Origin: Macrostomum lignano
Taxonomy: Eukaryota
Direction of reading: 5' to 3'
Assembly (NCBI GenBank): GCA_002269645.1
Contig: NIVC01003807.1
Coordinates: 1-64,000 of the forward strand
DNA length: 64,000 nt
Part shown: positions 50,992 through 55,300 of the stretch, in pieces
Layout of the letters: each line of letters starts with the position of its first letter
Numbering within the stretch: the first letter of the stretch is position 1
Translations under genes and position numbers: made by a program
The notes under the pieces: generated by a model
Database searches by the model: none
What the model was told of the DNA's origin: nothing
What the model saw: the letters and a program-made list of their open reading frames with translations, nothing else

Positions 50992-51000
50992 CTGGAAATA
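50992..51000 (-). promoter_or_regulatory. 3' splice (probably trans-splice) acceptor TATTTCCAG| immediately before the PGM3 reading frame
   Basis: The acceptor is in phase 0 with the PGM3 frame. There is an in-frame stop at 51036-51034 and no in-frame ATG between it and the acceptor. Confidence 0.7.
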
Positions 51001-51050
51001 TTGCGGGTTTTGAATGCGACTGCCGTCTCTGTCTCAACTCTCATAGGATC

Positions 51051-51862
51051 ACACAGACAGGCAGGCAGGCAGGCAGACAGACAGACAGACACTAAGACAG
51101 ACAGACACTAAGACAGACAGACACATAGACAGACATTAAGACAGACAGACACTAAGAAAGAGAGACAGACAGACAGACAGACAGACAGACAGACAGACAG
51201 ACAGACAGACAGACAGACAGACAGACATTAAGACAGACAGACACTAAGACAGACAGACAGACAGACAGACAGACAGACAGACAGACAGACAGACAGACAC
51301 TAAGACAGACAGACAGACAGACAGACACTAAGACAGACAGACAGACAGACAGACAGACAGACAGACAGACAGAAAGACAGACAGACACTAGAACAGACAG
51401 ACAGACAGACACTAAGACAGACAGACAGACACATAGACAGACATTAAGACAGACAGACACTAAGACAGAGAGACAGACAGACAGACAGACAGACAGACAG
51501 ACAGACAGACAGACAGACAGACAGACAGACAGACACTAAGACAGACAGACAGACAGACATTAAGACAGACATTAAGACAGACACTAAGACAGACAGACAG
51601 ACAGACAGACAGACAGACAGACAGACAGACAGACAGACAGACAGACAGACAGACAGACACTAAGACAGACAGACAGACAGACAGACAGACATTAAGACAG
51701 ACATTAAGACAGACAGACACTAAGACAGACAGACAGACAGACAGACACTAAGATAGACAGACAGACAGACAGACAGACAGACAGACAGACAGACAGACAG
51801 ACAGACAGACAGACAGACAGACAGACAGACAGACAGACAGACAGACAGACAGACAGACAGAC
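51051..51862. repeat. (GACA)n microsatellite with cactaa/cattaa interruptions, between RTEL1 and PGM3
   Basis: About 810 bp of GACA tetramers. Confidence 0.97.
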
Positions 51863-52384
51863 ATAGGCAGCCAAATTGAATGAAAACCGTGAAGCACGAA
51901 GTGTTAAGATATAGAAAAGTGTTTATAAACCGGTCTATATATTGCAACAGCTGGTTAAAAATGCTTTAATAAGCTTGAGAATTCAAACAGGCAGAACAGA
52001 ACGCAGTACACTATTAGCGTAGAAAACACAGTACACAATAGAAAAATAACATTAATATAATGCAAATGCTTGCATGGTGAAATATAAATTCAGAGTATTA
52101 AAGTTAATTAATAAACTTGATTAGTTGTTAACCAGTAAAACTTAGGAGTTGAGTCATGAGTCAAGACAGCACCCTTATTGCATTAGTTGGCATTAAAGAC
52201 AGCGATATATATCATAAATAATATAGTAAAAAATAGAAAATGCATATCGCCAATCAGCCGGGCCAAGTGTAAAAAAGAACATTGAGCTTCCTAATGGCAG
52301 TAAGTGAATTATAAAAATGCTTAATCATTTTTTGCGTAATAATCGTTAATCCAATTGTATTAACTTCGAACAGATTATTCCAGG

Positions 52385-55300
52385 TCAACAATCATTGGCT
52401 TTGGCCGCCTCCTCAGCTGCCCGCTGCCGAATGGCCTCGCCGTCCCTCTGAGTCAGCTTGCGCAGCGAGCGCCGCCGGACCACCAGCTTGCAGCGGGGGC
52501 ATTGCTTGACACCCTGGTGAGGGTTGGGCGAGCGTGCAGTGTTTGCTAATGGAATTAGGCGCATCCTATTAGACTCTGGGAAGCTAATGGCCCGCTACTC
52601 TATCTATCATCAGCATTAGACTCTGGGAAGCTAATGGCCCGCTACTCTATCTATCATCAGCATTAGACTCTGGGAAGCTAATGGCCCGCTACTCTATCTA
52701 TCATCAGCATTAGACTCTGGAAAGCTAATGGCCCGCTACTCTATCTATCATCAGCATTAGACTCTGGAAAGCTAATGGCCCGCTACTCTATCTATCATCA
52801 GCATTAGACTCTGGAAAGCTAATGGCCCGCTACTCTATCTATCATCAGCATTAGACTCTGGGAAGCTAATGGCCCGCTACTCTATCTATCATCAGCATTA
52901 GACTCTGGGAAGCTAATGGCCCGCTACTCTATCTATCATCAGCATTAGACTCTGGAAAGCTAATGGCCCGCTACTCTATCTATCATCAGCATTAGACTCT
53001 GGGAAGCTAATGGCCCGCTACTCTATCTATCATCAGCATTAGACTCTGGGAAGCTAATGGCCCGCTACTCTATCTATCATCAGCATTAGACTCTGGGAAG
53101 CTAATGGCCCGCTACTCTATCTATCATCAGCATTAGACTCTGGAAAGCTAATGGCCCGCTACTCTATCTATCATCAGCATTAGACTCTGGAAAGCTAATG
53201 GCCCGCTACTCTATCTATCATCAGCATTAGACTGTGGGGAGCTAATGGCCCGCTACTCTATCTATCATCAGCATTAGACTCTGGGAAGCTAATGGCCCGC
53301 TACTCTATCTATCATCAGCATTAGACTCTGGAAAGCTAATGGCCCGCTACTCTATCTATCATCAGCATTAGACTCTGGGAAGCTAATGGCCCGCTACTCT
53401 ATCTATCATCAGCATTAGACTCTGGGAAGCTAATGGCCCGCTACTCTATCTATCATCAGCATTAGACTCTGGGAAGCTAATGGCCCGCTACTCTATCTAT
53501 CATCAGCATTAGACTCTGGGAAGCTAATGGCCCGCTACTCTATCTATCATCAGCATTAGACTCTGGGAAGCTAATGGCCCGCTACTCTATCTATCATCAG
53601 CATTAGACTCTGGAAAGCTAATGGCCCGCTACTCTATCTATCATCAGCATTAGACTCTGGGAAGCTAATGGCCCGCTACTTTATCTATCATCAGCATTAG
53701 ACTCTGGGAAGCTAATGGCCCGCTACTCTATCTATCATCAGCATTAGACTCTGGGAAGCTAATGGCCCGCTACTCTATCTATCATCAGCATTAGACTCTG
53801 GAAAGCTAATGGCCCGCTACTCTATCTATCATCAGCATTAGACTCTGGGGAGCTAATGGCCCGCTACTCTATCTATCATCAGCATTAGACTCTGGGAAGC
53901 TAATGGCCCGCTACTCTATCTATCATCAGCATTAGACTCTGGGAAGCTAATGGCCCGCTACTCTATCTATCATCAGCATTAGACTCTGGGAAGCTAATGG
54001 CCCGCTACTCTATCTATCATCAGCATTAGACTCTGGGAAGCTAATGGCCCGCTACTCTATCTATCATCAGCATTAGACTCTGGGGAGCTAATGGCCCGCT
54101 ACTCTATCTATCATCAGCATTAGACTCTGGGGAGCTAATGGCCCGCTACTCTATCTATCATCAGCATTAGACTCTGGGAAGCTAATGGCCCGCTACTCTA
54201 TCTATCATCAGCATTAGACTCTGGGAAGCTAATGGCCCGCTACTCTATCATCATCAGCATTAGACTCTGGGGAGCTAATGGCTCTCTACTCTATCATCAT
54301 CAGCATTAGACTGTGGGGAGCTAATGGCCCGCTACTCTAACGCTTCAAACTGAACGCAGAAGCAGTAAGACTGTACAGACCACTTCAATAATGGATCGCC
54401 AGCACAGGAAGCAGCAGATGTGATCGCATGGCGCGGCCAAAGGCGTGTCTGCGTCTGCTGTCTTGCAGGCCTCGCATTTCATGCCGGATTCTTGAAAAAA
54501 TGGTAGAGATAAACGCTTAGTCAGTAGCATATTAGGGATATGATTGAATTGAAAAAAATGACGGAAAAACTCTACCCATAAGAGGTGATATAAACCTCTA
54601 ATAAAAAACTTGAAATCACTGACAAATATACAGAAATACTAACAAAGCAAATGTAATAAACAATATCTGTCTCTGATGATAAACACTATCAGCATCTAAA
54701 AGTAAACCATGATAAACACTATAAGCATCTGATAGTAAAATATGATAAACACTATAAGCATCTGATAGTAAACCATGATAAACACTATCAGCATCTAAAA
54801 GTAAACCATGATAAACACTATAAGCATCTGATAGTAAACTATGATAAACACTATAAGCATCTGATAGTAAACCATCATAAACACTTAAGCATCTAAAAGT
54901 AAACCATGATAAACACTATATAAGCATCTGATAGTAAACTATGATAAACACTATAAGCATCGGATAGTAAACCATGATAAACACTATAAGCATCTGATAG
55001 TAAACCATGATAAACACTATAAGCATCTAAAAGTAAACCATGATAAACACTATAAGCATCGGATAGTAAACCATGATAAACACTATAAGCATCTGATAGT
55101 AAACCATGATAAACACTACAAGCATCTAATAGTAAACCATGATAAACACTATAAGCATCGGATAGTAAACCATGATAAACACTATAAGCATCTGATAGTA
55201 AACCATGATAAACACTATAAGCATCGGATAGTAAACCATGATAAACACTATAAGCGTCTGATAGTAAACCATGATAGACACTATAAGCGTCTGATAGTAA

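Follow-up and report, generated by a model that had tools for sequence, protein, structure and literature searches.

Locus organization

The stretch analysed here (the window) comprises positions 1-64000 of contig NIVC01003807.1 in assembly Mlig_3_7 of the free-living flatworm Macrostomum lignano, and our subject is a pair of its genes, RTEL1 and PGM3 (phosphoacetylglucosamine mutase, also AGM1), together with the 1391 nt (52384 to 50994) that lie between the RTEL1 stop codon and the PGM3 splice acceptor. The two genes are adjacent on the minus strand with no gene called between them in any assembled copy, and a sequence-only reading of this DNA had proposed that they form a polycistronic unit resolved by spliced leader (SL) trans-splicing. 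The features on which the argument depends are collected in Table 1.

The RTEL1 product carries the Pfam domains DEAD_2, ARCH_RTEL1 and Helicase_C_2 and a C-terminal RING domain, and database matches to the helicase region bear the name RTEL1. A tblastn search places residues 133-1252 of a full-length paralogous model (P0400, 1252 aa) in 11 blocks between 63733 and 52388, and the window thus holds the 3' four-fifths of the gene. RTEL1 would head the possible unit, its upstream neighbour being divergently oriented and 2.5-3.3 kb off. The only annotation of RTEL1 on this contig is a shortened 848-aa protein, PAA49713.1, that runs into an intron near 57558; between that point and 52385 the remaining exons, through the RING domain and the stop codon, are intact and agree with the 1252-aa paralogous model.

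PGM3 is encoded by exons 50991-50534, 49869-49444, 49128-48984, 47748-47377 and 46915-46535, separated by introns that are all GT-AG, and its product contains the domains PGM_PMM_I, AMG1_II, AMG1_III and PGM_PMM_IV. The model is residue for residue that of PAA49712.1/PAA61556.1 (BOX15_Mlig008588g1), a transcript-derived record labelled 'partial' that begins LTQQSH, and the closest PGM3 outside Macrostomum is P0010, a sequence of metatranscriptome origin with 54% identity. A dispersed repeat (~240 bp, 49951-50187) in the first intron shares 93% identity with an insertion that the paralogous locus L011 carries at ~24.5 kb in an intron of its SNF2-family gene, an insertion that is missing from the corresponding site in the window.

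In transcript order, the gap consists of 521 bp of AT-rich sequence, an 811-bp (TGTC)n array and a 59-bp unique spacer. The AT-rich segment is made up of the RTEL1 3' untranslated region (UTR) and, beyond it, a PGM3 promoter or else a brief intercistronic stretch. The gap has a single poly(A) hexamer of canonical type, an ATTAAA (AATAAA is absent), and on sequence grounds it is a candidate for the RTEL1 poly(A) signal. The spacer contains an out-of-frame ATG at 51044 that opens an 18-codon upstream open reading frame and, in the PGM3 frame, a TGA stop at 51036-51034; it lacks pyrimidine richness, pyrimidines making up 46% of the last 59 nt before the acceptor. All coordinates of the sequence-only reading held on re-checking: the same-strand order, the distance (its 1393 bp includes the end bases), a microsatellite of about 810 bp (811 bp, 51053-51863, by Tandem Repeats Finder, TRF), an AT-rich remainder (31.9% GC over 521 bp), and the candidate ATTAAA at 51970-51965, the sole one in the gap.

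Table 1. Features of the RTEL1-PGM3 interval (window coordinates unless another locus is named).
Feature	Position	Strand	Remarks
RTEL1	52385..64000	-	residues ~133-1252; 5' end outside the window, ATG at contig ~66467
RTEL1 last exon	52385..52513	-	ends ...AAKANDC; 100% identical to P0400 C-terminus; stop TGA 52387-52385
AT-rich segment	51864..52384	-	521 bp, GC 31.9%; 517-523 bp and ~99% identical in 4/4 assembled copies
ATTAAA	51965..51970	-	415 nt past the RTEL1 stop codon; present in all copies
TATAAA	51922..51927	-	TATA-like; TATATA at 51941
(TGTC)n microsatellite	51053..51863	-	(GACA)n on + strand; interruptions TTAG, TTAATG, TATG; TRF
Unique spacer, array to acceptor	50994..51052	-	59 bp by TRF boundary
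Putative SL trans-splice acceptor TTCCAG	50992..50997	-	AG at 50993-50992; context caatatTTCCAG/TTGACT
PGM3/AGM1	46535..50991	-	five exons, 593 genomic codons, no genomic start codon
SL-suffix sites	L009 9992-10000; L011 9990-10000 (also L013 22754-22764)		window equivalent 50992-51002

The PGM3 acceptor and its start codon

From the stop at 51036 the PGM3 frame runs as far as the conserved YGTAGFR motif without an ATG, the first one coming after YGTAGFR, and the start codon must therefore come from elsewhere. M. lignano has one 35-nt spliced leader (CGGTCTCTTACTGCGAAGACTCAATTTATTGCATG, with the 3' end ...TTGCATG) and a published trans-splice acceptor motif, [T/C]TNCAG (Ustyantsev and Berezikov 2021, PMC8629364), which the TTCCAG preceding PGM3 exon 1 fits. 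This acceptor lies on a codon boundary, such that the SL AUG followed by UUG ACU CAA reads M-L-T-Q(-Q-S) in frame. The gene range of PAA49712.1 on the contig, 50991-46535, starts at the base following the AG, and given that this record is 5'-partial and begins LTQQSH there, the SL-trimmed transcript starts at 50991. Everything needed for initiation at the SL AUG is in place, namely a leader that ends in AUG, an acceptor in phase and the lack of a usable upstream genomic AUG. With four lines drawn from annotation and sequence in agreement, we are confident that the acceptor at 50992 is a real SL trans-splice site; the acceptor predicted by the sequence-only reading is in this respect almost certain, on the 5'-partial coding sequence, the motif and the probable polishing scars described below. 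Searches with Rfam, a tRNA scan and the SL sequence itself found no match in the window, and a scan of the window for SL RNA genes (ATG/GTRAG) returned a single chance match at 37959.

A conventional PGM3 would need a small cis-spliced first coding exon within the gap, with the array lying in an ordinary intron, much as nearly all the other introns of the window carry tandem arrays. The sole combination of ATG and donor in the phase of the acceptor starts at 52193 and runs for seven codons (MPTNAIR) to a donor AGG/GTGCTG at 52173. This candidate was set aside as unlikely on its weak donor (1.8 bits, where the four genuine donors of PGM3 score 5.8-10.7), and no credible donor was found in the 1.39-kb gap, the best reaching 2.4 bits. 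Moreover, translation from 52193 would begin 192 nt beyond the stop codon of RTEL1, the transcript-based public record has a 5'-partial coding sequence from 50991, and SL-derived bases at the junction in two other copies point to an SL junction instead. We consider a cis-spliced start exceedingly improbable.

Use of the 3'-terminal AUG of the SL as initiator has been described for Schistosoma mansoni mRNAs (Cheng et al. 2006, as related in PMC9851317 and PMC12582326). PGM3 resembles those messages in having a recipient exon without a start codon and an acceptor on a codon boundary, and differs from them in that its case is built on annotation and sequence.

Spliced leader bases in other assembled copies

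The acceptor junction is present in four assembled copies in Mlig_3_7, those of the window, NIVC01002422.1, NIVC01002019.1 and NIVC01003174.1. The window copy and NIVC01002422.1 read ...aatatttccag/TTGACTC and keep the TTCCAG. NIVC01002019.1 reads ...aatattGcATg/TTGACTC and NIVC01003174.1 reads ...gcTTtattGcATg/TTGACTC, so that in these two copies 9 nt (TATTGCATG) or 11 nt (TTTATTGCATG) of the SL 3' end replace TATTTCCAG, an in-frame genomic ATG is gained and the acceptor AG is gone. The altered bases are exactly those at which genome and SL differ (-2, -3 and -5, and in one copy also -10 and -11), and the alteration ends where the overhangs of reads would cease aligning. In addition, the acceptor differs between NIVC01002422.1 and NIVC01002019.1, which over 8 kb share 99.5% identity. 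The Canu contigs of Mlig_3_7 were polished by Pilon with Illumina DNA and with STAR-mapped RNA sequencing (RNA-seq) reads (PMC5730564), and the SL bases in the two copies are probably a scar of RNA-seq polishing, left where SL-bearing reads overwrote the genome. If this is true, the scars are themselves read-level evidence for the SL/TTGACTC junction.

Taken at face value, the sequence ...ATTGCATG/TTGACTC of two assembled copies has the ATG in frame and lacks an AG. If the GCATG bases belonged to the genome, translation of those copies would need no SL, and only the TTCCAG copies would be trans-spliced. Such a reading is compatible with either an operon or an independent promoter for the window copy. 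It is, however, quite unlikely given the exact coincidence of the changed bases with the genome-SL mismatches up to the point where overhangs stop aligning, the restriction of the difference between two nearly identical copies to the acceptor, and the documented polishing of this assembly with RNA-seq. A second way for SL 3' ends to be real DNA, and a very improbable one in our view, is that RNA-templated gene conversion, in a recent polyploid, copied trans-spliced PGM3 mRNA back into some of the homeologous copies; a start codon supplied by the SL would thereby have become a genomic ATG, and the acceptor would have been lost. If that were true, one genome would show a gene in passage between dependence on the SL (possibly within an operon) and autonomous expression.

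The RTEL1 strand also holds, at L012 6781-6788 and 8274-8281 (contig ~69246 and ~67753, beyond the window), two 8-nt matches to the 3' end of the SL (ATTGCATG). They precede the RTEL1 ATG by 2.8 and 1.3 kb in 3/3 copies examined. By our own estimate these exceed chance for 3.3 kb, and they could be further trans-splice scars.

One transcription unit or two

SL-resolved operons are known in flatworms, as the sequence-only reading had noted, and this species has both SL trans-splicing and many operons. The published rule for M. lignano places two genes in an operon when they lie on the same strand with less than 1 kb between them after subtraction of repeats found by RepeatMasker and TRF, and when the downstream gene is trans-spliced; after subtraction, the distances from one trans-spliced gene to the next have two modes, the main one near 100 bp, and the spacers of operons are repeat-rich; according to the authors, transcriptional units break at the repeats (PMC8629364). 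RTEL1 and PGM3 fall within this definition in orientation, trans-splicing and adjusted distance. Subtraction of the 811-bp array leaves 580 bp counted from the stop codon (579-587 bp across the four copies). Counted from the ATTAAA, some 140 bp remain if cleavage occurs about 20 nt past it, a figure that holds in 4/4 copies. Same-strand adjacency by itself is a coin toss.

If the pair is an operon, RNA polymerase II would read through from RTEL1 into PGM3, and the precursor would be cleaved and polyadenylated after the ATTAAA to give an RTEL1 3' UTR of about 440 nt. The SL would be trans-spliced at 50992 onto PGM3 exon 1, its AUG serving as the start codon of M-L-T-Q-Q-S. The gap would then consist of the ~440-nt 3' UTR, some 80 nt, the unstable (TGTC)n array and the 59-nt spacer, which is to say that a two-gene operon with a non-repeat intercistronic region of ~140 nt would have been swollen by neutral microsatellite growth.

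Chimeric gene models were taken as hints of operons in a recent flatworm study (PMC12582326), and the older ML2 annotation does fuse RTEL1 and PGM3 in one 1804-aa model, A0A1I8I4V1 (P0401), that reads ...AAKAND/YGSRIQNPQYFQLTQQ... across an intron (window 50992-52388) deleting the stop codon and the whole gap. This fusion is weak evidence for an operon, the intron being an invented one with poor splice sites (T/GTTGAC to gacagag/AC). Several points weigh against co-transcription. The gene-name prefix in Mlig_3_7 denotes a cluster of assembled transcriptional units (PMC5730564), and because the prefixes differ (Mlig027287 for RTEL1, Mlig008588/Mlig033967 for PGM3) the published RNA-seq assembly left the two genes unjoined. 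The raw distance of 1391 nt from the stop codon, or ~950 nt from the ATTAAA, is too long for a short-spacer criterion, the median intercistronic distance in S. mansoni being 99 nt, roughly a tenth of the raw spacer, and surveys of parasitic flatworms having been limited to 300 bp (PMC12582326). The TATA-like motifs of the AT-rich segment could mark a promoter there. Nor is conservation informative, because the copies differ by just 1-3% everywhere (identity of 99-100% in exons, 97.5-99.4% in introns, 98.7-99.0% in the AT-rich spacer and 96.9% downstream of PGM3).

The TATA-like motifs, the unjoined units and the long raw gap favor an arrangement in which PGM3 is trans-spliced but transcribed from its own promoter in the AT-rich segment, for example at the TATAAA ending at 51927, with RTEL1 terminating upstream and the microsatellite lying in a discarded outron. 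By published counts most trans-spliced genes of M. lignano fall outside assigned operons (PMC8629364), and upstream regions of no more than 2 kb sufficed for the reporters tried in this species (PMC5730564). On the other hand, TATA-like motifs occur here at roughly the rate expected by chance in sequence that is 68% AT (about 0.7 per 521 bp, our own estimate from base composition), the repeat-adjusted distance is within the short mode, which in the study of this species stands for operons, and an independent promoter would need to sit within or directly after the RTEL1 3' UTR. We regard an independent promoter as quite possible, if somewhat below an even chance. For co-transcription of RTEL1 and PGM3 as an operon the case appears about evenly balanced: the sequence-only proposal is borne out in part, in that the pair falls within the published operational definition for the species, while the published transcriptional units keep the two genes apart.

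The (TGTC)n array

As delimited by TRF the array has a period of 4, 202.8 copies and 82% matches, and it contains 169 TGTC units. The sequence-only reading had described it as a (UGUC)n tract of about 75% pyrimidine ending some 60 nt before the acceptor, and this description is accurate: on the transcribed strand the array is 72.6% pyrimidine, against 75% for pure (UGUC)n, and ends 59-60 nt before the AG. The further suggestion that the tract aids recognition of the trans-splice site found no support. The array is 808, 480, 466 and 224 bp long in the four copies between constant flanks (517-523 bp on the AT-rich side and 62-64 bp of spacer as cut by the copy-comparison script, which corresponds to the 59 bp of the TRF boundary), a motif of the same kind occurs inverted in an intron, and arrays are common. 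The intronic array, (TCTA)n/(TCTG)n at 62836-63507 in RTEL1, belongs to the same tetranucleotide family and is inverted relative to transcription.

Tandem arrays are found in nearly every intron of the window and cover 51% of it, or 35% when a 16-kb satellite is excluded, and an array in the gap is unremarkable for that reason. The simplest and most likely reading of the (TGTC)n array is therefore a neutral repeat expansion, and neutral growth of repeats in operon spacers has been proposed genome-wide for M. lignano (Ustyantsev and Berezikov 2021, PMC8629364).

Comparison with known operons

The operons of Caenorhabditis elegans use a dedicated SL2, spacers of ~100 nt and a defined Ur element. 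RTEL1-PGM3 is like them in placing a putative upstream poly(A) site before a trans-splice site, with a pyrimidine-rich stretch tens of nucleotides ahead of the acceptor, and unlike them in that M. lignano has a single SL and the (UGUC)n tract, at most a putative signal, varies in length. Operons of S. mansoni and other parasitic flatworms (e.g. cytochrome b-c1 subunit 7 and enolase; PMC12582326) likewise combine two genes, one type of SL, polyadenylation and SL trans-splicing, but the median of their spacers is 99 bp and the upper bound for candidates 300 bp, compared to 1391 bp raw for RTEL1-PGM3. The resemblance to short-spacer operons exists only once the repeats are subtracted. The nearest likeness is to the repeat-inflated operons of M. 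lignano itself (Wudarski et al. 2017, PMC5730564; Ustyantsev and Berezikov 2021, PMC8629364), with which the pair shares the species, same-strand neighbours, a [T/C]TNCAG acceptor, a simple-repeat spacer and an adjusted distance below 1 kb and near the 100-bp mode; it differs from them in that the RTEL1 and PGM3 units are unjoined in RNA-seq and the distance criterion alone speaks for the pair.

Synteny in relatives, which the sequence-only reading had offered as a check, does not extend to the annelids Dimorphilus and Capitella. As the pair is not adjacent in either, the linkage is not ancient. The pair and its gene identifiers are named in no searchable paper or supplement, in agreement with the earlier impression that this combination was unreported. 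RTEL1-PGM3 is accordingly a candidate that has gone unreported, yet an ordinary one, in a class already published for the whole genome.

Other features of the window

INTS7 lies on the plus strand at 8253-13792, its exon 8253-9920 being 100% identical to PAA49709.1 at the same coordinates of NIVC01003807.1. A TTTCAG acceptor stands 22 nt before its ATG, after a tandem array of 21 copies of a 29-bp unit (7594-8255), and there is a good donor, CCT/GTGAGT, near 7253; the TTTCAG could belong to a 5' UTR intron or be a further trans-splice site, and an SL AUG added at that point would not share the frame of the INTS7 ATG. Between INTS7 and an SNF2-family gene lies a 16.3-kb satellite (16918-33199) composed of 582 copies of a 28-bp unit, TTAGCTTCCACCTCAGTAGCTCAGGAGT, with 99% matches. 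In two paralogous loci (L006, L007) the distance between these genes is just ~4-7 kb. A text search of papers for the 28-bp unit found no match.

Implications

Mlig_3_7 apparently has SL bases written into the assembly at a trans-splice site, which is a caution for those who use it. PGM3 is a clean example of a start codon that exists only in the mature trans-spliced mRNA, and it is because of this that annotation from the genome alone labels the gene 'partial' or merges it with RTEL1. Should the two genes be co-transcribed, they would add one more two-gene operon to the roughly 10,000 operon genes predicted in M. lignano, which in itself would be little new, and they would indicate that microsatellite expansion can stretch the spacer within an operon to nearly 1 kb.

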